From contig NIVC01001646.1 of assembly GCA_002269645.1 (NCBI GenBank), forward strand, positions 62,001 through 126,000: a stretch of 64,000 nt of DNA, written 5' to 3'. Below are positions 35,398 to 60,917 of this stretch, piece by piece; the first letter of the stretch is position 1; each line of letters starts with the position of its first letter. Below the pieces are notes generated by a model. It was not told the DNA's origin, did no database searches, and was given only the letters and a program-made list of their open reading frames with translations. The position numbers and the translations under genes are program-made. This DNA is from Macrostomum lignano. Lineage: Eukaryota.

Positions 35398-36133
35398 CAG
35401 TCAGTCAGTCAGTCAGTCAGTCAGTCAGTCAGTCAGTCAGTCAGTCAGTCAGTCAGTCAGTCAGTCAGTCAGTCAGTCAGTCAGTCAGTCAGTCAGTCAG
35501 TCAGTCAGTCAGTCAGTCAGTCAGTCAGTCAGTCAGTCAGTCAGTCAGTCAGTCAGTCAGTCAGTCAGTCAGTCAGTCAGTCAGTCAGTCAGTCAGTCAG
35601 TCAGTCAGTCAGTCAGTCAGTCAGTCAGTCAGTCAGTCAGTCAGTCAGTCAGTCAGTCAGTCAGTCAGTCAGTCAGTCAGTCAGTCAGTCAGTCAGTCAG
35701 TCAGTCAGTCAGTCAGTCAGTCAGTCAGTCAGTCAGTCAGTCAGTCAGTCAGTCAGTCAGTCAGTCAGTCAGTCAGTCAGTCAGTCAGTCAGTCAGTCAG
35801 TCAGTCAGTCAGTCAGTCAGTCAGTCAGTCAGTCAGTCAGTCAGTCAGTCAGTCAGTCAGTCAGTCAGTCAGTCAGTCAGTCAGTCAGTCAGTCAGTCAG
35901 TCAGTCAGTCAGTCAGTCAGTCAGTCAGTCAGTCAGTCAGTCAGTCAGTCAGTCAGTCAGTCAGTCAGTCAGTCAGTCAGTCAGTCAGTCAGTCAGTCAG
36001 TCAGTCAGTCAGTCAGTCAGTCAGTCAGTCAGTCAGTCAGTCAGTCAGTCAGTCAGTCAGTCAGTCAGTCAGTCAGTCAGTCAGTCAGTCAGTCAGTCAG
36101 TCAGTCAGTCAGTCAGTCAGTCATTCAGTCAGT
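35398..36133. repeat. (CAGT)n microsatellite, about 180 units
   Basis: Direct reading; one interruption near 36123. Confidence 0.97.
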
Positions 36134-36964
36134 CGATTTTTCGACTGTTTTTTCGATTTTTCAAAACTCGTTTTTTTCAATTTTTTTCGAGTAGCTTGTG
36201 ACTTTAGCGTTTTTATGCTTCAGTTGTTTATGTCTAAAATGACCTTATGTTTTTACTTACAGTAACAGCATAAGAATGTTTTAATATAGGGAATTGGCCA
36301 GCTCAAATATGTTACAAAATAAACTTTTGTAGACCACGAAGAGACTTGTTTACGGGCAAAGGAAGCTTCATATCATTTTTTCGTCCACTTTTACGAGTAT
36401 TTAGCTTCTGAAGTGTCAGAGATAGCGCGACTCGGTGGGCAGTGTAAGCCAGACATTTGTGTATTAGTAGGAGTAATCTATCTGAACTTAAAGCAAGAAA
36501 GAGATAAAGTCTGTTACAACTAAACATAGGATGTTTTGACTCATGAAATTAAATTTCTTCTATTAGTTGCACTTCTTTGGAGCTTATAGTTACATAAAGG
36601 GTATGTAAACATCAAAACATCAAGTTACTGAATTATTCATGGACGTGAGTCGTGAGTTCGAAATAACTTTCAGGCAGTATGAGAATCGTTGCTCAGAGAT
36701 TGCTAAAATACAAATACCAATGCAAGTTTGTTGACTATTTTGTCCGTAGCGGATTTAGGGACGCGCAAAGGGCGTTCCTTGCGTTCGAGTTTGATATTTT
36801 ATTTTTATATGGGTATTTACATTTCATATGAGTAAATACAGGGGGCGTCGCCATGGATTTTATGGTGGGACAAAACCAAGAAATCAACATGTTTTGTATG
36901 TAGACATGTAACTCGTACATGACTAAATTCCTACGTTTCCATTATTTTGATAATTGTGTTGTCA

Positions 36965-37232
36965 GCGCTCATTTCGGCGCCGCAGGCACTCATTTTGGCG
37001 CCGCAGACACTCATTTTGGCGCCGCAGGCACTCATTTTGGCGCCGCAGACACTCATTTTGGCGCCGCAGGCACTCATTTTAGCGCTGCAGGCACTCATTA
37101 TAGCGCTGCAGGCACTCATTATAGCGCTGCAGGCACTCATTTTGGCGCCAAAGGCACTCATTATGGCGCCGCAGGCACTCATTATGGCACCGCAGGCACT
37201 CATTTTGGCGCCGAAGGCGCTATATTTTGGCG
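36965..37232. repeat. 21-bp minisatellite (ggcgccgcaggcactcatttt)
   Basis: Direct reading. Confidence 0.9.
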
Positions 37233-38146
37233 CCCTGAAGAAAAAATATTGTTGTCACAACGGGCCACAAGGTGGGGTGGGGGGGCAAAGCATTAGCATG
37301 TCCACTCCATAGCTTTTACTGGGGGGGACGTGTCGGAGGTGACGCGCCTTGGTAAAAAATCAAAAACAAAGATAACTTGTAATCTGCGCCACCCCGTTCA
37401 CAATTTTCTGGGTCCACGCCTGTTCTCTGTGTAGTTTTTTATTTTTTGGTATAGGCATAAGCAGAACGGAGATGGTATAAAGGCTTGTGACAGTTCCCAT
37501 AACCGCTTTTAGCCTGTTTTGATATACCTTTGTACTCGTATGCTAGTTAGTGTACGCTATGGCCGCGTATGTACACTGTTCCCCCCGCTAGTCCCAGGTC
37601 CACGCGGGCTAAAAATAGACGCAGCGTACATACCGGGCTGAAAAATTGGCAAGGACGGCCCAAAATGAGGGGGAGGGGTTGCCGGCTGAACGGCAAGGGT
37701 TTTTCTAGACTAGAGGGAAGGCCGCACTCGGATTGGACAACAACTGCACAGCTAAACTGCACAGTTTATAAAACTGCCCTCCATTCGTTCCCGCATTCAT
37801 TCTTGCAAGTCGACTAGTTAGGTAGCTAGCTAGCTCTCCTTTTAGACTAAGCGATAGTAAGCTACTACTAGACGGCTTACGATAATTCACATGGCCAGCG
37901 TTAGGCTAAAACAATAAAGAAATGACCACTCTACTGTTACACGTCTCCAAGCAGAGGAGATCAACCAAGCAGCAGCAGTCGCAGCAGCAGAGCAAAGGAA
38001 ACAGACGACCATACAGTTCTACTACGCCAATTGGCCGAATACGACAACCGGGATTAGCGGCATTTGCGCACTACTTTGCTTTCTCTAGAGTAGCCCTAGG
38101 CAGGTACACGCCTGCTTTAGCCGCAGACTTGCCGTCGCAGACGACC

Positions 38147-41100
38147 ATGTCAGCAGTTGACACGCAAGCTGCTCCAGCCTTGAACTGTTTCCGTCAGCTT
38201 CCACATCAGCAGCAATGTAAAACAAAAAGCCAAAGCTATTTTAACTGTCAGAAGCAGCAGAAGCAGCAGCAACAGCTACAGAAAAAACTGGGTGAGTCTA
38301 GGAATAACAAAATGAACCTATACTATATATTGTTGTCTATTCTTAGCTGTACCTTTTAGCTGTACCCTATATGTGTATGTATGAATTGAAGTATCAAGTA
38401 TTTGTAATATAACAATATAGGACATCATTTTATGTAATCTATACCTATAAAATGAAAATGCTATCTTACAGTTATATAGTTATATAGTTATATATAGAAA
38501 TTAGAATGCTACTAGTATTAGGCTAAGTCTGTTTTTTCAAGGCACAAAATAAAAATATACTTGATGTACTTATTATATAATAAATGATACTATTTTACAT
38601 ATAGCTTTTATATAGTTTTGAAAAAGTTATTGCAAAGCATTCAAACAAATATAGCTGTCTATTTAATAATTTTTAATGATTTGATATTCAGCAATTTTTT
38701 ATAAAGTAAGAACCTATATTTAAGGGTCCATATTAAATTTATTTAAAATAATAATAATGTCAGATTTGGCATCAAGCCAAACTTACTTACTTTAGAAGAC
38801 TTTAATTGAAATGAAAGTTTAAAAAAATATGCCTAGAAAAATTCCATATAAGCATTTTTATAGTAAGTTTTTGCCAATGATCTATATTATCTAAAGTACA
38901 TATGGTTCTTTTGAATTCCTTTAAGGCTTTACATGTACTTTATCCTTAACAGGTTCCATTGCCAGGAGCTACTCAGATCCCGATCTGCCTAGCAGCAATT
39001 CTGCTGCACAATTCAACTACAAAGACTCTCCTTTGTCATCAAGTTTGAAGTCGCCTCTAGATTATTCCATGGAGTCGCCCAACTATGTCGCAGTTTTCAA
39101 AGTCGATTGCGAGAACCAATCGACAGGACTGGCGCCGCCTTTGATGTTCCGGCACAGTTTCGACTGCCTGCTGGACCTGCTGAATGGCCACGGTGAGCGC
39201 GACGGCGAGGGCGACGGCGAAGGTAGAGGCAACGGCGAGGTTGAGGCTGAACCGCAACCAGCGCCAGCGGCCGCCGCCGAAGCCACCACCGCCGAAGCCA
39301 CCGCCGCCGAAGCCACCGCCGCCGACGTCCTGACGGTGGCGGGGGGGCCGCCGCTTCACAAGGCTGTCTCCGACTCTATTGGCAAGTCGATGAAAAAGCG
39401 AGTCATCTTTGCCGACGATGCTGGCAAACCGCTGCAGCAGGTCCGCGTGTTCAGCGAGCCCAGCTGGGCCCCGCCAAAGTTTCTGTCCATCAGTGAGTGC
39501 TGAAATGCCGACTTTGTACAGGCTGTTTCCCTCAGGCTGTTCACTGGCCTGTTTACCTCCCTCAGGCTGTTCACTGGGCTGTTTCCCTCAGGCTGTTCAC
39601 TGGGCTGTTTCCCTCAGGCTGTTCACTGGGCTGTTTACCTCCCTCAGGCTGTTCACTGGGCTGTTTCCCTCAGGCTGTTCACTGGCCTGTTTACCTCCCT
39701 CAGGCTGTTCACTGGGCTGTTTACCTCCCTCAGGCTGTTCACTGGGCTGTTTCCCTCAGGCTGTTCACTGGCCTGTTTACCTCCCTCAGGCTGTTCACTG
39801 GCCTGTTTCCCTCAGGCTGTTCACTGGCCTGTTTCCCTCAGGCTGTTCACTGGCCTGTTTCCCTCAGGCTGTTCACTGGCCTGTTTCCCTCAGGCTGTTC
39901 ACTGGCCTGTTTCCCTCAGGCTGTTCACTGGCCTGTTTACCTCCCTCAGGCTGTTCACTGGGCTGTTTACCTCCCTCAGGCTGTTCACTGGCCTGTTTCC
40001 CTCAGGCTGTTCACTGGCCTGTTTCCCTCAGGCTGTTCACTGGCCTGTTTCCCTCAGGCTGTTCACTGGCCTGTTTCCCTCAGGCTGTTCACTGGCCTGT
40101 TTCCCTCAGGCTGTTCACTGGCCTGTTTCCCTCAGGCTGTTCACTGGGCTGTTCCCCTCCCTCAGGTTGTTCACTGGCCTGTTTACCTCCCTCAGGCTGT
40201 TCACTGGCCTGTTTCCCTCCCTCAGGCTGTTCACTGGCCTGTTTCCCTCAGGCTGTTCACTGGCCTGTTTCCCTCAGGCTGTTCACTGGGCTGTTCCCCT
40301 CCCTCAGGTTGTTCACTGGCCTGTTTACCTCCCTCAGGCTGTTCACTGGCCTGTTTCCCTCCCTCAGGCTGTTCACTGGCCTGTTTCCCTCCCTCAGGTT
40401 GTTCACTGGCCTGTTTCCCTCCCTCAGGTTGTTCACTGGCCTGTTTCCCTCCCTCAGGTTGTTCACTGGCCTGTTTCCCTCCCTCAGGTTGTTCACTGGC
40501 CTGTTTCCCTCCCTCAGGTTGTTCACTGGCCTGTTTACCTCCCTCAGGCTGTTCACTGGGCTGTTTACCTCCCTCAGGTTGTTCACTGGCCTGTTTACCT
40601 CCCTCAGGCTGTTCACTGGCCTGTTTACCTCCCTCAGGTTGCTCACTGGGCTGTTTCCCTCAGGCTGTTCACTGGGCTGTTTACCTCCCTCAGGTTGTTC
40701 ACTGGGCTGTTTCTCTCAGGCTGTTCACTGGGCTGTTTACCTCCCTCAGGTTGTTCACTGGGCTGTTTCCCTCAGGCTGTTCACTGGGCTGTTTACCTCC
40801 CTCAGGTTGTTCACTGGGCTGTTTCCCCCTCCCTCAGGTTGTTCACTAGGCTGTTTCCCCCTCCCTCAGGTTGTTCACTGGGCTGTTTCCCTCCCTCAGG
40901 TTGTTCACTGGCCTGTTTCCCTCCCTCAGGTTGTTCACTGGCCTGTTTACCTCCCTCAGGCTGTTCACTGGCCTGTTTACCTCCCTCAGGTTGCTCACTG
41001 GGCTGTTTCCCTCCCTCAGGTTGTTCACTGGCCTGTTTACCTCCCTCAGGCTGTTCACTGGGCTGTTTACCTCCCTCAGGCTGTTCACTGGGCTGTTTAC

Positions 41101-43422
41101 CTCCCTCAGGTTGTTCACTGGGCTGTTTCCCTCAGGCTGTTCACTGGGCTGTTTACCTCCCTCAGGTTGTTCACTGGGCTGTTTCCCTCAGGCTGTTCAC
41201 TGGGCTGTTTACCTCCCTCAGGTTGTTCACTGGGCTGTTTCCCCCTCCCTCAGGTTGTTCACTAGGCTGTTTCCCCCTCCCTCAGGTTGTTCACTGGGCT
41301 GTTTCCCTCCCTCAGGTTGTTCACTGGCCTGTTTCCCTCCCTCAGGTTGTTCACTGGCCTGTTTACCTCCCTCAGGCTGTTCACTGGCCTGTTTACCTCC
41401 CTCAGGTTGCTCACTGGGCTGTTTCCCTCCCTCAGGTTGTTCACTGGCCTGTTTACCTCCCTCAGGCTGTTCACTGGGCTGTTTACCTCCCTCAGGCTGT
41501 TCACTGGGCTGTTTACCTCCCTCAGGTTGTTCACTGGGCTGTTTCCCCCTCCCTCAGGTTGTTCACTAGGCTGTTTCCCCCTCCCTCAGGTTGTTCACTG
41601 GGCTGTTCCCCTCCCTCAGGTTGCTCACTGGGCTGTTCCCCTCCCTCAGGTTGCTCACTGGGCTGCTTCCTTCCCTCAGGTTGTTCACTGGCCAGTTTTC
41701 CTCAGGGTTATTCACTGGGCTGCTTCCCTCAGGGTTATTCACTGGGCTGTTTCCCTCCCTCAGGTTGTTCAATGGGATATATGGGGGTGTATGCCGAAGC
41801 TAAAAAACTCCCGGCCCCGATCTTCCCCAAATCAGGGCCACTTCCAGCCGACCCGGACGCGGCCGATGACATTGAATACAGTTCGGACAAATCCGGCCAG
41901 TTCCGCTGCCAGTTTGCCCAACCCTCGTCAAAGTACATTCTGTTCAGAGAGAATGTGGAAAAGAATTGCGTATCGCTTAGCAATTTATATTTTGACGGGC
42001 TGACAGCTAAAGGCTCGGTCTCGGTGAAGAATATCAGCTTCAAAAAGAGAGTCTTTGTTCGGGTGAGCTTCGATCAATGGGCGAGCTATCGCGACTTTGA
42101 TGCGACTTACGCCAGCTCGCAGGACTCTCGTCAGGTGTGTCTCATTTTTCCGGATCTGGGACTGGGATCTGAAGACTGGGATCTGAGACTGGGATCTGAG
42201 ACTGGGATCTGAGATTGAGATCTGAGACTGAGATCTGAGACTGGTATCTTAGACTGGGATCTGAGACTGGTATCTGAGACTGGGATCTAAGACTGGGATC
42301 TGAGATTGAGACCTGAAGACAGGGATCTGAGACCTGAAGACAGGGATCTGAGACTGGGATCTGAGACTGGGATCTGAGACTGGGATCTGAGACTGGGATC
42401 TGAAGACTGGGATCTGAGACTGGGATCTGAAGACTGGGATCTGAGACTGAGACCCGAGATCGTGATCTGAGACTGGTATCTGAGACTGGGATCTAAGACT
42501 GGGATCTGAGATTGAGACCTGAAGACAGGGATCTGAGACCTGAAGACAGGGATCTGAGACTGGGATCTGAGACTGGGATCTGAAGACTGGGATCTGAGAC
42601 TGGGATCTGAAGACTGGGATCTGAGACTGAGACCCGAGATCGTGATCTGAGACTGGTATCTGAGACTGGGATCTGAAGACTGGGATCTGAAGACTGGGAT
42701 CTGAGACTGGGATCTGAAGACTGGGATCTGAAGACTGGGATCTGAGACTGGGATCTGAAGACTGGGATCTGAGACTGGGATCTGAGACTGGGATCTTAGA
42801 CTGGGATCTGAGACTGGGACCCGAAATCGGGATCTGAGACTGGGACCGGAGATCGGGATCTGAGACTTGGATCTGAGACTGAGACCCAAGATCGGGATCT
42901 GAGACTGGTGTCTGAGACTTGGATCTGAGACTGAGACCCAAGATGGGGATCTGAGACTGGTGTCTGAGACTGGGATCTGAGATTGGGATCTGAGATTAGG
43001 ATCCTGAGAGTGGGATCTGAGACAGGGATCTGAGACAGGGATCTGAAAAAGTGAATTTAATAGAATTGAATCCGAGGCCGGTAGCTCAGCCAAATATCAG
43101 GAAAAGTACGCGCTACATTCATTCCTCCAGCCATCCCTATCGCCATTCCCCGCAGGACTCATTCGTGTTCAGCTTCCCCTGCCCCGCCGACTTGGAGCGC
43201 GGCTTCGAATTCTGCGTCTGCTTCGAGGCCGAAGGCCAAGCCTTCTGGGACAGCAACTTGGGCGCGAACTACAAGGTGTCGGTGGCCAAGAAATCTGCTT
43301 CGTCCAAGTCCAGCAGGCCGGCCAATGCCTACACCAGCGACTACAAGCCCAACTATTCGGGCGTCACCGACTTCTCAGAGTTCTCTGTCTGGGACCACTT
43401 TGCCGATCGGGTATACTATTGA
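38147..43422 (+). CDS. PPP1R3: Glycogen-targeting protein phosphatase 1 regulatory subunit 3 (PPP1R3B/C/D-like, CBM21). Exons: 38147-38291, 38953-39492, 41836(or 41848)-42134, 43156-43422
   Basis: PP1-docking motif KKRVIFADDAGKPLQQVRVF in exon 2. CBM21 motifs in exons 3-4: GSVSVKNISFKKRVFVRVSFDQW and FEFCVCF..WDSNLGANY. Splice sites are GT-AG with matching phases 1/1/0 (CTGG|gtgagt, ttaacag|GT, ATCA|gtgagt, aaatcag|GG, CAG|gtgtgt, ccgcag|GAC). Start is accATG at 38147; an upstream in-frame ATG at 37922 is possible. Confidence 0.9.
39520..41765. repeat. 26-33-bp minisatellite filling PPP1R3 intron 2 (ctgttcactggcctgttt[acct]ccctcagg)
   Basis: Direct reading; a 416-bp block is duplicated (identical ORFs at 40846 and 41262). 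Confidence 0.97.
42155..43045. repeat. 12/13-bp minisatellite in PPP1R3 intron 3 (gagactgggatct)
   Basis: Direct reading. Confidence 0.95.
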
Positions 43423-43464
43423 TCTCTCGAGATCCTAGATTCTGCGCTCGTAATTTTTAGTGAT

Positions 43465-43865
43465 CCCAAATCCCAAATCCCATGATCCCAGATCCCATGA
43501 TGGCCCAGATCCCATAATCCCAGATCCCATGGTCCCAGATCTCGGATCACCTGATCCCAGATGCCAAAATCCCAGATCCCATAATCCCAGATCCCATAAT
43601 CCCAGATCCCATAATCCCAGATCCCATAATCCCAGATCCCATAATCCCAGATCCCATAATCCCGGATCCCATAATCCCGGATCCCATAATCCCAGAACCC
43701 ATAATCCCAGATCCCATAATCCCAGATTCCATAATCCCAGATCCCATAATCCCAGATCCCATAATCCCAGATCCCATAATCCCGAATCCAAAATCCCAAA
43801 TCCCATAATCCCGGATCCCATAATCCCAGATCCCATAATCACAGATCCCATAATCCCAAATCCCA
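43465..43865. repeat. 15-bp minisatellite 3' of the PPP1R3 stop (cccagatcccataat)
   Basis: Direct reading. Confidence 0.95.
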
Positions 43866-44070
43866 TGCCTCCAGATCTTTACAATCTCGAAGCCCTTTTA
43901 TCCCAGGTCCCAGCCATCCCGGATCTCAGATCCCCATCGCGAATTCCCATCATTCGTTTTGAAGGGACCATATCTATGGTCTAACACATGCGTTACTATG
44001 CGGATGGGTCCATTCGCATATGCATATTATCCATGCACTCATCATCCGGTGTAGCTTAGTCTCAATTAAA

Positions 44071-44530
44071 GTATTGGTTTTGTCAGCCTAACTGAGAGTG
44101 GAGCCATCCAAAGTGAGAATCCTGCCTACGCTGACTGCGAGGGGCCTGGCTGCGTGCGGCCTTGGTCTATGGGCCATAGACTATTAAGGATAAGCAAAGT
44201 GATGAAAAGCCATCCAATGTGAGAATCCTGCCTAAGCTGAATACGAAGGGCCTAGCTGCGTCCAGCCTAGTCTATGAGCCATAGACTATAAAGGATAAGC
44301 TAGGATTGGCTAGTCATATGGCTCAGAAGCTCAGAAGGTATAAAAATAAAAGAATACGACGCATAGACCAATCGATTCTCACATTGGATGGCTTTTTATC
44401 CCTTTGCTTGTCCTTTATTGTCTATGGCCCATAGACTGGGGCTGCACGCGGCCGGGCCCTTCGCAGTCGGCGTAGGCGGGATTCTCATTTTGGGTGGCTT
44501 TATTCTCAGTTAGGCTGACAAAAGCAATAC
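44071..44530. repeat. Inverted repeat / MITE-like element: 157-bp arms (44071-44227 and 44374-44530) built from ~106-bp subunits
   Basis: Ungapped manual alignment of the arms gives 137/157 identity. Each subunit contains the palindrome gtctatgg(g)ccatagac. A third subunit copy lies at ~44208-44300. No clear TSD. Confidence 0.85.
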
Positions 44531-44844
44531 TAGTAGTTGTTTACTGATTCGTCCCACTCATTAACAATCAGCACCAATGCTTTCTGCTGTGATTATCAGC
44601 TTTTTACTCTTAGATTAGCGTTTTTGTCTCTTAGACTGGTTGAATTGTTTTAGCGTTGGCAGCGGAAAATCCGTGGAAAAAAAGCCGAACTAAAAGATTT
44701 CGAAGACTATATTATAGAATTAAAATATGCGATTTTGTAGACTTTCTTTTTAGTAACACTATAGCTAAAATAGTAGAATCCAGCCGTTCTTTCCTGTTAC
44801 TTGTCTGTGCTTTACTACACATGTTGCATCAGTTGAAATGGCTT

Positions 44845-45420
44845 CTTAGGGCGCCAAGTAGGTGATGTCAGGAGGGCGTCAAGTAGGTGATGTCAGGAGG
44901 GCGCCAAGTAGTTGATGTCAGGAGGGCGTCAAGTAGTTGATGTCAGGAGGGCGCCAAGTAGATAAATGTCAAGAGGGTACCAAGTAGGTGATGTCAGAGA
45001 GGCGCCAAGTAGGTAATGTCAGGAGGGCGCCAAGTAGGTAATGTCAGGAGGGCGCCAAGTAGGTGACGTCAGAGAGGCGCCAAGTAGGTGATGTCAGGAG
45101 GGCGCCAAGTAGGTGATGTCAGGACGGCGCCAAGTAGGTGATGTCAGGAGGGCGCCAAGTAGGTGATGTCAAGAGGGCGCCAAGTAGGTGATGTCAGGAG
45201 GGCGCCAAGTAGGTAATATCAAGAGGGCGCCAAGTAGGTGATGTCAAGAGGGCGCCAAGTAGGTGATGTCAGGAGGGCGCCAAGTAGGTAATGTCAAGAG
45301 GGCGCCAAGTAGGTGATGTCAAGAGGGCGCCAAGTAGGTGATGTCAGGAGGGCGCCAAGTAGGTGATGTCAAGAGGGCGCCAAGTAGGTGATGTCAGGAG
45401 GGCGCCAAGTAGGTGATGTC
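44845..45420. repeat. 25-bp minisatellite (gggcgccaagtaggtgatgtcagga)
   Basis: Direct reading. Confidence 0.95.
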
Positions 45421-48107
45421 GAGAGGGGCATCTCCTACCCCGGACTACTGCGCTCTGGCCTCTGAGTCATTCTGCATAGCGGTGTAGATTTTTGTCAGCA
45501 ATGCATAGTAAATTTGAAGTATTTCTGTAGAAATTATGTCAAGGATTTTTGTTTTTTCATGACTTTTTCCGCGTCATTATTGCATGATTATTGACCTGAA
45601 TTGTTGATCGAATATGATGCTATTCACTGTTATTCTTGTCCCTTAAGGATAGATGTGATGGAGGATAGATGTGCAACAATTCTATTGAATTTTAACTTCC
45701 TGGCTAATAGTTTTGCACTTAAACCCCAAAAAACAGATGAAAAAATGCTTTCGTTCACCTCTTTCAAGTTAATAGTTATTAGTCTCCCAGACCTATTGAC
45801 TGTCTCTTTTACATCAATATTGCGAGCAACTCAGCAAAATTTGCCTTGAGATTCATTGAGATTCCCGAATCCTGACCAACGTGGTCTGTCTCTGCTCAAT
45901 CAAACAATATTTAATAATATTTTTCCCTGAGTGTTAAATTAAAGTTAAAATATAATTCGCAGAGAAATATATATTCAATAAGAATTGAATGTACCGTCTT
46001 TCGATATAAAAATGTAAGCTTTTGCTTGAGTTGTTATTATTTATTTATGTTAGCTTATTTGTTGATGTAGCTAATTACGAGCTGTATTTTAATAACCATA
46101 ATTATTGCGCGCGTCCAGACAGTATTTGATAATAACTTCGGTATGTTTATTTAAGCACACTTGGACAGTTGGGTAGTGTAGTGTATATACAGTGTTTGTT
46201 TTAGCTGCTGGAGACAAGAAAGGCTCTCGGTCTGGTTACATTATTTAGACTGTCATAAGATTATTTTATGCACTATTTATTAAGTTAGGCTTTTAACCAG
46301 TTAGGGCCTGCTAATTGCGTTACTTAAATCTCCTTGCCTTGTCCTCACTGCGCCGGGCACAGACAGACGGATATTTTTTATAGACTAAACTTAGAATAAA
46401 GGGCCGGCCGCCCGTTCACGCGTTAGTCTCTAATTAGTTTCGTTGACGGCTTTTAAATGTACGCTTAAAAATCTGTGTACCCCTGGAATGGGTGTGAGGG
46501 CGGGTTGGGGGAGGTGGGTACGTGTGGGGCAGGGGCAGAGTTTATCGATCGGTCCGGCGCGTAGCGGGCCTCGGAATGCAGCAGCTTCCAAAATACAATC
46601 CTGTTAATTTTGGCATGCAGTGCTAATGCCACCAGTTTAGTTACTAATAGTAACAAGCTAAAGATGGCTAAGCATTCTTTTGTTTGTATTGTAAAATAAT
46701 CATTATTAAGATATAGAAATTTAATAAACTATACTGTATGCATATGCATAGCTCAAAAATAGCTCGTTCCGGTCTCAATTTGAAAGAAATGACAATTTAT
46801 TTCTGCAACATCATTCAAATGACCTAATATTTTCTTTCATGCATCATATCTAAAAGATCGCATCTAGCATTGTGTAGACACATGGCCATTATAAATTGAC
46901 GCAGGCTAAGATAAGACAATAACAGCTCAACGTCACGTGACGCCAGGCCTGCAAGGCCTGCTCCTCTGTAAAATATAGTCGGCCTATTAACGAATGCCCT
47001 TGACATGCAACTTTATCTTAGGCTCATATCGTATACATGCATATTTTCTCGTGGCAAATCGGGGAAAAACTATATCGAATTACATTGCATTGTTGCAATG
47101 TTTATACGCTAGTTTTCTTTAAAAATGACCTTTACACGCACATGAACTCCGGTTAAAAACATTAATTCCAGGAACAATTAATTCATCCCAGCAAATTCTT
47201 CCTTTCTTTTTGCTACGCTAAACGCTTCGAGTCGAAATTTAAAGGCGCAATATAAATTGCTCCTACTCTGCAGATTTATTCGTCCTAAATGCTAAAAAAG
47301 GTTGATCGACCGTTTAAACCGTCATCGAACTATCAAACAGCACGGCACGATAATATACTCGTACAAATCGAGGATACTTTTATCAAAATTGACCAGCAAA
47401 AAAGCAAAATTGCAATTGTATTTACGAGTATTTAGGGCAATGTTTTGTTTTTACATTATTTTTTCCACTCCAATTGTATTAGTAGCACACATTGCAATAA
47501 TTCTAGAAATTTCTGATTTTGCCCTAATGATAAACATATAATTCCAAATTAAGTTGAGTTCCCACCCACGTGAACTCATTCTAGAACATTCTTTCTTCCA
47601 GAATGTGTTCCATCGAAAAAAACCTGGTTGCAATCTTTGAACACTATCTTGCGAACTATCTTACTTGTCATTAAATCAGTAATACCTAAGTATATGTTTT
47701 TCCCCACTTGTTTTATTTATTTATCGCTTACGCCCATAGATAAGTCAAACAAGCTGTGGGTAATGATGTATTTATTACTCAGTTCGTGTCAAGCAACAGA
47801 AATTCTAAAGTACTCGGGCCAATAAATAATTTTTTGGCCCGGCCAAATAAATTTCTTTCGCATCAAATAAATGCTTTTCTTTGTCTATGACCGGGCCTAA
47901 CTGGGTAATAATTAAGAACCACCGCCTACCGCCTTTACGCCTAATGTATCCCCCACTTGCCCCGGGCGAACGTCTATGGTCTCAGTGTAAATTTCATTTA
48001 TTTGCATCGGTGCAAATAAACGGTTTATTTCACTGTGCAAATGCTCTTTCGATACAATAAAGATACAACAATAAAGCTTGTAGCTCGTAGCAGTTTTTTA
48101 TTTATAA

Positions 48108-48278
48108 GATTGATTGTCGTAATATTTTTTTCCTTCGTTGCCTTCCCTATCAACCATAGACAACACTAGCTGTATGCTGGGTAAAAAGCCCTGAGATTAA
48201 TACAAGCACTTTCTGCGTTGTCTATAGTTGATGGGGAAGGCAACGAAGGGAATTAAAGTACAACGACAATCAAGCTCA
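48108..48278. repeat. Imperfect inverted repeat (~55-bp arms, ~55-nt loop)
   Basis: ttgattgtcg..ccttcgttgccttccctatcaaccatagacaac pairs with gttgtctatagttgatggggaaggcaacgaaggg..cgacaatcaa. Confidence 0.75.
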
Positions 48279-49715
48279 TAACTAGCTGCTATAAGCTTCA
48301 TTTGGTTTCAACTACATGTAAAAAGATAGAAGTGCTTTTGCTTAACTGTACAAGTTAAACCTTCGTCATACATGTACATGTACACAGCGAGATAAAAAGT
48401 TTATTTTTTTGTTACAATAAAAGGACAAATTGTCAAAAATTTGTGGAAAGGGAATTGTATTATCGTTTTAATTTCAACATACCAGGAGTTAAGTGTGTTG
48501 TGTCGTAACTTGACGGGTCAACTTAATGATAATATTGTTACGCTAATATTTCTACTATAAGTATGGTATAATGATGGGTTTCGACCTTTCGGCCCCCTTG
48601 TGGGGAAGCCTTCGGGCCTCAGGTCTCAGAAATAAATCAATTAGAGACCTGGCCCCCCACTCCTGTCAGATGGTCAGCCCCATGGTAGCTTGATCGTGTG
48701 GCGAGCAGTCTAGGTCCTATAGCTAAGAGAGGGATAGCGAGAGACAAGCAGGGAGAATTTTGAAGGTAGAAATTAGTTAATCCGCAGATTAGCTAACTCG
48801 CTGCCACCAGCCCGTACGTCCTGGCTCACCACACCGGGACTCTCGAAATCGGGCTTCCGACTAGAAGGGGCTTTGCACTTACATGCCAACCAGTGTCTTT
48901 TTGCTGTCAATCTCGAAGTCATAGCCGATGATAAGGGACACTGCTGGGACTTGATCGCATTGGCCATGCAGGTACAGAGGGGACTTGTGCAGGAGATTCT
49001 TGCAGTGGCGAGACTATGGGGTAGCTACATGTACTATTACATAGCTAAATACGAAGATATGTACTTTTGGCCTTCAACGCGCCAACCAGCCTCTCCTAGC
49101 GCTGATGATAGGCTAACTCGAACATCAGAGACCGCGCATGATTCATCACCCGAGCCGCTTGGCTAACCTAGAGTGCACAGAGTACACCTCTGGAGCCGAT
49201 TCTGCACTATTGGCAATTTCGCTAACTGATTTGATAGACTGATCGACTGAGAACTGCCTTGCCATTGGTCCACTATGACCGGCGCCTACTAGCTTAGCTA
49301 TTGATCTGAGCCATCGGCGAACAAAGAAATAAAACCGATGAAAATAACTGTTAGATTTAACCTTCTCCTTAGATCACTTCACACTTCAGATTGAATTGGA
49401 GTCTTAGACTACTAGCAGTATTATTGAATGACTTCTGCCTAGCTTAGTGCTTCGCAGCTGTAGGCCCGGGATGATGCTGATGTCACAATCTTCGCTGATA
49501 GCTAGCAGGTGATGCTCTTCACTTTGACGTTCACTGCTGATGACCGGGGGATTCGTCCTTGATGATGATGGGATCGCAATCCGGGGATCAAGAAACGACG
49601 GTCAATTTCTGCATGGCCGGTGGAGCCAAGGGTGGCACCCGGTCGCAAGAAGGTTTGCAGGGGTAGCACCCCGGAAAGGAAGAAGGTTGTAGTCCGAGCG
49701 GGCCAAAAACACCGG

Positions 49716-49817
49716 TTTAAATAGCCGCCAACTGGACCGCAGTTTGTTATAATGGAACACGTCGATTCTGATTGGCTGAGCCGATTTGTTAAAATGAGTG
49801 CCGAATTTTCTGATTGG
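49716..49817 (-). promoter_or_regulatory. Candidate Pol II promoter: two CCAAT boxes and a TATA-like element
   Basis: The minus strand reads AGCCAATCAGAA twice (49813-49817 and 49771-49775), then TATTTAAA at 49716-49723. Confidence 0.45.
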
Positions 49818-51872
49818 CTAAGCTTGTTGCTACCCAGTGACCGGGAGATCCTATCAGTTCCCTCGGGGTCGTAAAAACATGACAGGTGCGGCCATAAATC
49901 AATCAAAATCGCAACAAAATGATTTATGACTTTTCGCGTAGAATTGACAAAAATTAATGAAAAAATATACATTAGAAAGCTTTTATTAAATAGAAACTGA
50001 AGATAATGAAGAGAAATCGCTAATTGCTAATCCCAAAGTACTTTTAGGGGTAAAACGCATAGCTGTCAAAAGCTGTCACACGCTTGAGTGAACACGAACA
50101 ATAGGCCCTGCTCTCATAAATCTTGATGACCTGTCAAAATGATGGGAAAAGAGCTATCATTCGCATCCCCTCAGACCATCTGGCGCCCGCCTCAACACTG
50201 AGTGAGGCGCAGGTGGCTGTCAGACCAGCTTCGAAAGCGATGATTTATGACCCAAAAAGCTGCGCCTATATGTTATTATGACTACTAGTATGACCAAACA
50301 TTATATCTAGCATAGATTCTATCCTAAAAAGGATAAAAATGCCCATTGCCCACTGTTAGTAGGCTAGTAAGTTTAGGGCCCATGTGCTAGCGCGGGATTT
50401 AGAAAAAAGCACTTACGCTCCCACTTTCAGTAGAGTAGTAGATAAATCATCTGTATAATGTATTATTTATAACGTGATCACATCTCTGGCTCTTAAATTT
50501 ATCCATCGTGCAGTTTTTCTAAGTTGACTAAAGGAAGTGCTTATCCCCAGGGTCCCGTGTCGATAACTCTATTTTATTCACACGCCCCGCCGCCCCCCCC
50601 CCTAGGATCCGCCACTTGTTCTAATAAACGATTTGATAAGGATCAAGTAAGTTTCTAGGTCGGATCGATCGTGTTGCACCCTAATACCAAGGATTACTTA
50701 CATGTAAGTCGGACGGGAAACTACGTTTCATGGTAAATTTTAAGAAGGCAGATATTTTTTGAAAAAAACATTACGGAGACACAATGTACAAGTTATTCTT
50801 TTTACAGCACAAAAAAAGAATTATTGCATGCTTTTGATTAGGAGGCAGAACCAATGTTCGTCTTCACATGTTTTGCCTTTATTATAGCAATTCCTATTGA
50901 TATTTAGAGCTTTTGTTTAGAAAATTAGGATTCTATGTTAATTTTGTATATCGAACGAACATGTCCTATCCTATATACTTTACATGTGACTTAAAAATAA
51001 TAATAAATTTAAATGTATGGCGACTCGACTCATCGGCTTTATAAATCTATCTTTATCATCTCGGTTATACATATTGACAAAATGAATTGTTACACAGTCA
51101 GCAAAGAATTTATGTACCTAATCCTTGGTAAAACATGTAAATGATATGTACTAACTAAGTGATTATAAAGGATTGTGGCCGTGGTGGAATTTACAACGCT
51201 ACTTGTAACCAGTTTTAATAAAAGTAAATGATTTAAATCAGAGCAAGTGCAAGCAGCATTTTTAGCTTTAAATTTTAGTGTTCAAAACAGGTCAAAACTC
51301 AGGATTCACACATATATCTCGTAAAATTATGGTAATACAAGAATGTATTAAGCTTAGGATTTGTTAATGTTAATATTAGCTTCATCGATGTTTCATCGAA
51401 TTTTTTTTCTACGAAACGCCGGTTGCCGACAATGGCCTAGATTATTATTTGGCCAGTAGTTGTAATTCCTCCAGTCTTGTTTATTAAAATGATTTTGTAC
51501 TTTTTAGAACCAAATCACATTAAAAAACTAAAAGTACCCCCTTGCTATTTGAAGAACCCATTCTTGGTAGCTAGCCATGCCCATCCAGTCTGTTTTTTTT
51601 GTCAGAATTTAGAAATAGCAGAATCCAAAATCTGCATACCATTCCCAATAGCATCAACCACAACCAATAAAAGCAACATTTCATGTTTTATGATTGCTCA
51701 TGATACAGAGTATAAAATCTTAGAAACCAGCGAAAGCTGAGGAAAAATTTGACATTTAGCACAAAAAGTTTGATGCCAATTTGAAAGTCAGGCAATCTTC
51801 TAGTTTCGCACGTTTAATTCAAACTGTTTTTAAAACGACAGTTAACGACAGTTTTGTTTTATGTTTTATGCC

Positions 51873-60446: not shown

Positions 60447-60917
60447 GCTTCCGGACATTTGCCCTCCGGCACTTCCCCTCCGGCACTTGCCCTCCGGCAC
60501 TTCCCCTCGGCGGCGTTTGCCCTCCGGACATTTGCCCTCCGGGACATTTCCCCTCCGGACATTTGCCCTCCGGACATTTCCCCTCGGGGACATTTGCCCT
60601 CGGGGACATTTGCCCTCCGGACATTTGCCCTCCGGACATTTGCCCTCCGGACATTTGCCCTCTGCAAATTTACCCCCTCGCACATTACTCACCTCACCTC
60701 CTCCTGTACCCACCCGTCGTTCCTCCAGCACCAACCTCATCCTCCCGCCTCTTGCATCCATCAGGTTCTTCTCCAGCCAACAACTCATCCTTTTCTAGTA
60801 AGCAATATATACCCGCGCCCTACCCTATCCCCAGCCTTACCTGTACTTTTCCAGAGGGGAAATGTCCGGAGGGCAAATGTCCGGAGGGCAAATGCCGGAG
60901 GGCAAATGTCCGGTAGC
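60447..60917. mobile_element. Non-autonomous foldback / Mutator-like MITE, 471 bp
   Basis: Termini gcttccggacatttgccctccggca and tgccggagggcaaatgtccggtagc are inverted with 1 mismatch in 25. Arms are built of 15-bp GGACATTTGCCCTCC repeats. Exact 11-bp direct repeat cgtaaagaagc at 60436-60446 and 60918-60928. Confidence 0.85.

Follow-up and report, generated by a model that had tools for sequence, protein, structure and literature searches.

What could make the two arms of an inverted repeat in the flatworm Macrostomum lignano differ by transitions that, in a transcript of one strand, would all form G-U pairs, and never by transitions that would leave A facing C? The repeat lies behind a PPP1R3-like gene in a stretch of 64,000 nucleotides (here called the window) from contig NIVC01001646.1 of assembly Mlig_3_7 (GCA_002269645.1). 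The contig itself matches window positions 36001–50000 at 100% identity.

The inverted repeat and its setting

The gene upstream was recognised from a spliced guess, which gave a 94% match to CBM21-domain proteins of M. lignano. Its coding pieces lie at approximately 37922–38293, 38952–39491, 41817–42173 and 43141–43422, the last including the stop codon (43420–43422, + strand), and the inverted repeat begins about 650 bp downstream of this stop. Minisatellites fill the introns of the gene as well as the stretch immediately after its stop codon. For 10 kb to each side the annotation shows no gene besides the PPP1R3-like one, and no Rfam family was found in 43000–46000. The features of the region are the following:

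37922–43422, + strand: PPP1R3-like gene (CBM21; RVxF motif KKRVIFAD), tblastn 100%/97% to M. lignano PAA65487.1 (P0001; Pfam CBM_21)
43462–43866, no strand assigned: 15-bp minisatellite of 26.5 copies (repeat search), between the PPP1R3-like stop and the inverted repeat
44065–44070, + strand: ATTAAA, the first poly(A)-signal-like hexamer past the stop codon, abutting the left arm
44070–44227, + strand: left arm, made up of a terminal segment (44070–44101, 32 nt), subunit S1 (44102–44207, 106 nt) and the first 20 nt of subunit S2
44208–44300, + strand: subunit S2, a tandem copy of S1 with 87% identity to 44102–44195, which serves as outgroup
44228–44373, + strand: spacer or loop of the hairpin, made up of the remainder of S2 and unique sequence
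44345–44350, + strand: AATAAA, in the hairpin loop
44374–44531, + strand: right arm, made up of the reverse complements of the first 20 nt of S2 (44374–44393), of S1 (44394–44499) and of the terminal segment (44500–44531)
44719–44724, + strand: ATTAAA, the first poly(A)-signal-like hexamer beyond the whole hairpin

The repeat search delimited two ungapped arms of 158 nt, 87% complementary and separated by 146 nt; this is the same feature that the first-pass annotation had described as gapless 157-bp arms at 44071–44530. Subunit S2 holds a 17-nt palindrome-like core, GTCTATGAGCCATAGAC. Near-perfect palindromes of 17 nt (GTCTATGGGCCATAGAC and variants) occur in each S subunit, at 44165–44181, 44270–44286 and 44420–44436, and each arm thus carries a small hairpin of its own. 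To judge from its sequence, the palindrome could be the protein-binding site of a former mobile element. At the ends of the repeat no target-site duplication was found, the best flanking direct repeat being 4 nt at shifted boundaries, nor was a poly(A) tail found at the repeat; in these respects a local inverted duplication seems a better description of the feature than a transposon.

A hexamer scan bore out the AATAAA that had been reported in the loop. Among the candidate poly(A) signals at 44065, 44345 and 44719, only the last would place the whole hairpin in the mature mRNA. Over the entire window AWTAAA hexamers number 126, against 66.6 expected from dinucleotide-preserving shuffles.

Relatives of the element were sought in several collections. 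Within the 64-kb window blastn (word size 7) returned the self-match only, and exact look-ups of two ORFs of the element gave no match. Its concatenated six-frame translation, compared with 5.8 billion proteins, likewise found no match and no homologous coding sequence, and degenerate 27-mer scans of metagenome and prokaryote genome collections, neither of which holds flatworm DNA, returned none, as expected. The sole further copies reached are two syntenic ones, L002 and L003. The only other inverted repeat in the window, at 60470–60908, consists of 15-mer arrays (CATTTGCCCTCCGGA) facing their reverse complement some 170–320 nt away; it was considered as a control and rejected as too short and ambiguous.

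Arm mismatches, sister copies and local background

Compared base by base, the arms show 20 mismatches, namely 16 transitions and four transversions (44077, 44182, 44185 and 44200). At eight of the transitions a left-arm G faces a right-arm T and at the other eight a right-arm G faces a left-arm T, which gives G:T on the + strand at 16 of 16 sites and A:C at none (two-sided binomial p=3e-5). The earlier count of 20 differences, with 16 transitions all compatible with G-U pairing and no A-C pair, was recovered exactly. Chance as the origin of the G:T-only pattern was rejected on this probability and on the 18 of 18 sites found across both element types described below. GC-biased gene conversion, replication asymmetry and symmetric CpG decay were rejected as well, these being strand-symmetric or far too weak to produce 16:0. 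Fourteen of the 16 sites lie within the GC-rich centre, 44090–44169.

Folded as RNA, the + strand reaches −335.7 kcal/mol (z=−27.8) and the − strand −275.6 kcal/mol. A transcript of the + strand would thus contain a long, near-perfect intramolecular dsRNA, its stem of 158 bp comparing with a threshold of more than about 30 bp. When 15 of the G residues are set back to A, the longest perfect run of the stem becomes 68 bp and five mismatches are left; such a stem would be young, near-perfect dsRNA of the type that ADAR edits promiscuously. The neighbours of the 16 putative A-to-G sites lean in the direction of ADAR preference, below significance: a 5′ G is present at 1/16 of them versus 17/84 of all arm adenosines (p=0.17), and a 3′ G at 8/16 versus 25/84 (p=0.07).

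The direction of change was read with S2 as the outgroup. Eleven transitions could be polarised, and ten are A-to-G on the + strand (p=0.012), of which the right arm has seven and the left arm three; the sole C-to-T is at 44488, and the polarity of 44494 is fixed by four subunit copies. The first-pass annotation had likewise read about 10 of 11 comparable sites as A-to-G with this third subunit as outgroup, a result which is reproduced here, and had cautioned that the outgroup is imperfect through its adjacency to the left arm. That caution is overturned. Both arms contain the S1–S2 junction together with the beginning of S2, including the T at 44218 that is diagnostic of S2; the tandem duplication is therefore older than the inverted one, which makes S2 a true outgroup. 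In addition, the informative sites that side with the left arm, those that side with the right arm and those specific to S2 are intermixed along the unit and show no gene-conversion tract; the idea that S1L and S2 had exchanged sequence by gene conversion, spoiling the outgroup, was rejected on this interleaving. The mismatches, as measured between arms and copies and not between RNA and DNA, appear clustered, of one type (A-to-G) and confined to one strand.

Two sister loci in the same assembly carry the same inverted repeat: L002 (NIVC01000257.1), found through the paralogous protein P0002, and L003 (NIVC01001647.1), found through P0004, to which a cluster look-up had led. All three copies compared come from the one assembly, Mlig_3_7. 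L002 and L003 are identical over 750 bp around the element, and one 4.2-kb block shows 99.86% identity between them. The presence of the locus three times, with a divergence of about 1.5%, fits the hidden polyploidy reported for M. lignano. An assembly-specific duplication or a foldback chimera was rejected, the repeat lying mid-contig in three contigs.

The window differs from L002/L003 by four transitions, all within the arms (44102, 44158, 44183 and 44478), by transversions at 44185 and 44675, and by two indels, one of 1 nt at 44677 and one in the loop, where the window lacks 27 nt that L002 and L003 carry after 44368. At either end of the 27-nt segment (L002 13439–13465) stands CAAT, a hint that the window type lost it by microhomology-mediated deletion. 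Each of the four transitions is A/G on the + strand, opposite a T that is constant in every copy, and so represents a single A-to-G change; G occurs only in the window copy at 44158 and 44478, and only in L002/L003 at 44102 and 44183. When both element types are pooled there are 18 G:T pairs and no A:C pair; the sites are 44098, 44100, 44101, 44102, 44113/44488, 44141, 44158, 44164, 44183, 44204, 44410, 44438, 44439, 44450, 44454, 44469, 44478 and 44494. Fourteen of the G:T sites are common to both types and 2+2 are private; the transversions divide into three shared and one private.

The 6.9 kb of flanking sequence provides the background. Here the window and L002 diverge by 1.5% (102/6875), with 25 A/G versus 23 C/T differences and 48 transitions to 54 transversions, a ratio of about 0.9 that is unusually low. 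The arms have diverged between copies at this same rate (5/316). Their own transition:transversion ratio of 16:4 is higher than that of the flanks (Fisher p=0.0075). From four transversions about 3.6 transitions are predicted, half of them A:C, which implies that some 14 extra G:T-type transitions were added; since the copies split there have been four G:T-type arm changes versus 1.1 expected (p=0.026). The excess of transitions, as read from these alignments, points to added A-to-G changes rather than to a selective filter. As a pattern, then, the A-to-I-like signature claimed by the first-pass annotation stands, strengthened by a sound outgroup, a 10:1 polarity and four copy-separating A/G transitions.

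Every G:T pair may formally be read the other way, as a C-to-T change on the + strand. A strand-specific deamination of cytosines in the DNA of both arms, whether RIP-like, APOBEC-like or transcription-associated, would place 7 of the 16 changes at CpG, versus 21% of arm cytosines. This is nevertheless highly improbable. C-to-T is found at only 1 of the 11 outgroup-polarised sites, and at 4/4 of the between-copy differences it is the purine that varies and the T that is constant. The background between copies (A/G 25 vs C/T 23) is strand-symmetric, and CpG decay alone, also strand-symmetric, should give A:C pairs in equal number.

Selection on a functional RNA hairpin, either a 3′UTR structure or a precursor of endo-siRNA/hpRNA, would let only G:U-compatible transitions survive, perhaps including those from CpG-to-TpG decay. 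It agrees with the lack of any A:C pair among 16–18 transitions, with a + strand fold better than the − strand fold by 60 kcal/mol, and with the gathering of the sites in the GC-rich centre. The lone C-to-T at 44488 likewise yields G:U, and a CpG-to-TpG reading is possible at 7/16 sites, in a window with a CpG observed/expected ratio of 0.50. Against it, the polarity is 10:1 in favour of A-to-G, though C-to-T at the 87 arm cytosines would be equally tolerable, and arm transitions are 4x the transversions versus 0.9 in the background, which argues that changes were added and not merely filtered. Reading the sites as C-to-T requires parallel changes in S2 and S1L at the non-CpG positions 44107, 44163 and 44191, and at 44107 also a change in the right-arm remnant of S2. 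A single mismatch in a 158-bp stem of −336 kcal/mol should be nearly invisible, and four transversions have been tolerated. The arms diverge between copies as quickly as the flanks do (5/316 vs 1.5%); in place of a slower-than-flank stem with compensatory changes of both kinds, the changes found are A-to-G only and the transition:transversion ratio is raised. The six-frame protein search with the element brought up no target or homologous gene. Since purifying selection would lower the rate and would pass C-to-T as readily as A-to-G, and neither effect is seen, hairpin selection is weakened, and we consider it unlikely. The first-pass annotation had listed it among three explanations without ranking them; the transition excess, the near absence of C-to-T and arms no slower than their flanks tell against it.

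Possible origins: edited RNA in the consensus or altered DNA

The most economical cause appears to be the import of edits by polishing: with a probability of roughly 0.5, the sequence patterns reflect a transcribed hairpin that is hyper-edited by ADAR and whose edits entered the consensus through RNA-seq reads. The local inverted duplication downstream of the PPP1R3-like stop would be transcribed on the + strand, within a long 3′UTR or by read-through, and the transcript would fold into a duplex of about 158 bp in which ADAR would hyper-edit A to I in both arms. Polishing by Pilon with RNA-seq and DNA reads would then turn the most heavily edited adenosines into consensus G. The true DNA arms would differ at only about five positions, these being the four transversions and the C-to-T at 44488.

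According to its published methods (PMC5730564), Mlig_3_7 was indeed polished with Pilon on both RNA-seq and DNA reads, which gives documentary support to the earlier suggestion of a consensus polished with edited RNA reads, the artefact itself being what we infer. ADAR1 and ADAR2 exist in planarian flatworms, where they act on dsRNA responses (PMC8797187), and the editing of inverted repeats by ADAR is general in metazoans (PMC9989829). By analogy, ADAR would be active in M. lignano. Transcription of the + strand presumably extends across both arms, and the level of editing and the RNA coverage are presumed sufficient to outvote the DNA reads. Since the locus exists in three near-identical copies, DNA reads map to it ambiguously. 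Pilon weights reads by mapping quality, by which STAR reads (MAPQ 255) would count for more than Bowtie2 reads that map to several places; this weighting, together with the ambiguous DNA mapping, makes it plausible that RNA evidence outweighed DNA evidence. A literature search brought up neither work on ADAR or RNA editing in Macrostomum nor a published account of edited sites imported into an assembly by polishing.

Without new biology, such an import accounts for the restriction of the pattern to one strand, for its polarity, for the raised transition:transversion ratio and for discordances between copies that are A/G only. It needs, on the other hand, 16–18 adenosines at which edited reads exceed about half of the weighted pile-up, with RNA outweighing DNA. 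Polyadenylation at the AATAAA of the loop (44345) could stop the mRNA short of the right arm, which would then be covered by few reads. The private:shared ratio of G:T sites, 4:14, is close to the 1:3 of the transversions, which is also what genuine clock-like change of the DNA would produce, and the clustering of 14/16 sites in the GC-rich centre also suits a C-to-T/CpG model.

Alternatively the G residues may truly be in the DNA, ADAR-type A-to-G changes having become genomic; we regard this as distinctly unlikely. The strand-pure pattern and the A-to-G polarity are accounted for as well as by polishing. The split into shared and private sites (14 vs 2+2), similar to that of the transversions (3 vs 1), is expected if changes accumulated in real time, and the four G:T-type changes since the copies split exceed the 1.1 expected (p=0.026). 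The AATAAA in the loop might also leave few stable transcripts over the right arm. Three routes are possible. The first is an RNA intermediate, through retro-copying or through RNA-templated repair of the fragile palindrome from an edited transcript; the second is the action of ADAR on the non-template DNA strand paired with the nascent RNA of the opposite arm; and the third is selection for genomic G at edited sites ("hardwiring"), by which the long self-dsRNA would be blunted. The replacement of edited sites by genomic G through hardwiring has been described as an evolutionary pattern (PMC7186786). All the same, A-to-G change at tens of times the background would be needed (about 14 extra in about 84 adenosines, with transversions at 2.5%), no poly(A) tail or target-site duplication points to retro-insertion, and the documented RNA-seq polishing is a simpler account of the same data. 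To our knowledge there is no established mechanism by which edits enter germline DNA at the same locus, that is, at their locus of origin. That this flatworm hairpin repeatedly gained ADAR-type A-to-G changes in the genome itself, affecting both of its arms and two gene copies as they diverged, is very doubtful. The presence of the changes in DNA is the only strongly novel reading, and it keeps a small chance.

Known counterparts, consequences and surrounding repeats

Judged by its sequence, the feature is probably an ADAR-substrate hairpin and hence of a known kind. With the hyper-edited inverted-repeat hairpins formed by primate inverted Alu pairs, C. elegans 3′UTRs and young metazoan inverted repeats (PMC9989829) it shares a long near-perfect duplex beside a gene and clustered A-to-G changes on the presumed transcribed strand only and in both arms. 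Such substrates avoid a 5′ G and favour a 3′ G, a preference towards which the present sites lean short of significance. It differs from them in that the G stands in a genome assembly and is not an RNA-versus-DNA mismatch, editing here being read from the assembly alone; no paper describing an ADAR substrate in Macrostomum was found. Its likeness to assembly-polishing artefacts lies in the use of RNA-seq in polishing Mlig_3_7 (PMC5730564) and in a pattern that is what edited reads would write. For the import of edited sites, which is proposed for the present locus, no published case was found.

Drosophila hpRNA/endo-siRNA loci are also long one-strand inverted-repeat hairpins in which G:U pairs are tolerated, but here no target gene homologous to the arms was found at the protein level, and the polarity and the transition excess favour added mutations. 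Foldback elements and MITEs offer another parallel, the arms having tandem subunits, S1 and S2, each with a short palindromic core, over a total of about 460 bp. Unlike such elements, the repeat has no target-site duplication and no dispersed copies in the 64 kb or in the protein and pattern scans, and one arm has only a truncated copy of the second subunit, as a local inverted duplication would leave. Engineered plant G:U hpRNA transgenes (PMC9263138) resemble it in that transitions on one strand keep a G:U hairpin and break the perfect DNA palindrome; in those the changes are designed, C-to-T and in one arm, whereas here they are A-to-G, affect both arms and arose either naturally or as an artefact.

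If edits were indeed imported by polishing, the locus would be the first pointer to ADAR-edited self-dsRNA in the model flatworm M. lignano, and the widely used Mlig_3_7 may hold edits written as G wherever expression is high. Such sites would be hidden from editing screens that compare RNA with DNA, and would appear as false paralog differences in a recently polyploid genome. The locus is in this respect a data-quality warning for the Mlig_3_7 reference. A genome-wide scan for inverted repeats with G:T asymmetry on one strand would then list edited hairpins without RNA data. Should the G residues instead be real DNA, the locus would offer a natural example, of a rare sort, in which editing-type changes reached the germline in place, and would imply either a germline route from edited RNA or the action of ADAR on RNA:DNA hybrids between nascent RNA and the non-template strand of the opposite arm.

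Several further observations concern the sequence around the element. The product PAA65487.1 is without five residues (TAEAT, one 15-bp repeat unit) that are encoded at window 39271–39325, where contig and window agree; the gene model, or a transcript behind it, could be the source of the discrepancy. CpG depletion over the whole window (observed/expected 0.50) is accompanied by ratios of 1.16 for TpG and 1.11 for CpA, a pattern usually tied to cytosine methylation and notable for a flatworm. Two runs of differences between paralogs were considered as hyper-editing clusters and rejected: the A/G run at 44850–45350 reflects register variation within a 25-mer array and goes in both directions, and that at 51181–51378 is of mixed direction and not significant.

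The PPP1R3-like gene and its surroundings contain four large minisatellites whose units are unrelated, at 39528–41776 (30 bp x 78), 42152–43046 (13 bp x 69), 43462–43866 (15 bp x 26) and 44848–45427 (25 bp x 23). They give rise to long spurious ORFs in several frames on both strands, and the lengths of the arrays vary among the three assembly copies of the locus. In the 44848–45427 array, most of the 25-mer variants that separate the window from L002 are + strand A/G differences that fall at two fixed positions (GGTGATG/GGTAATG and CAGGAG/CAAGAG); they are treated as array heterogeneity.
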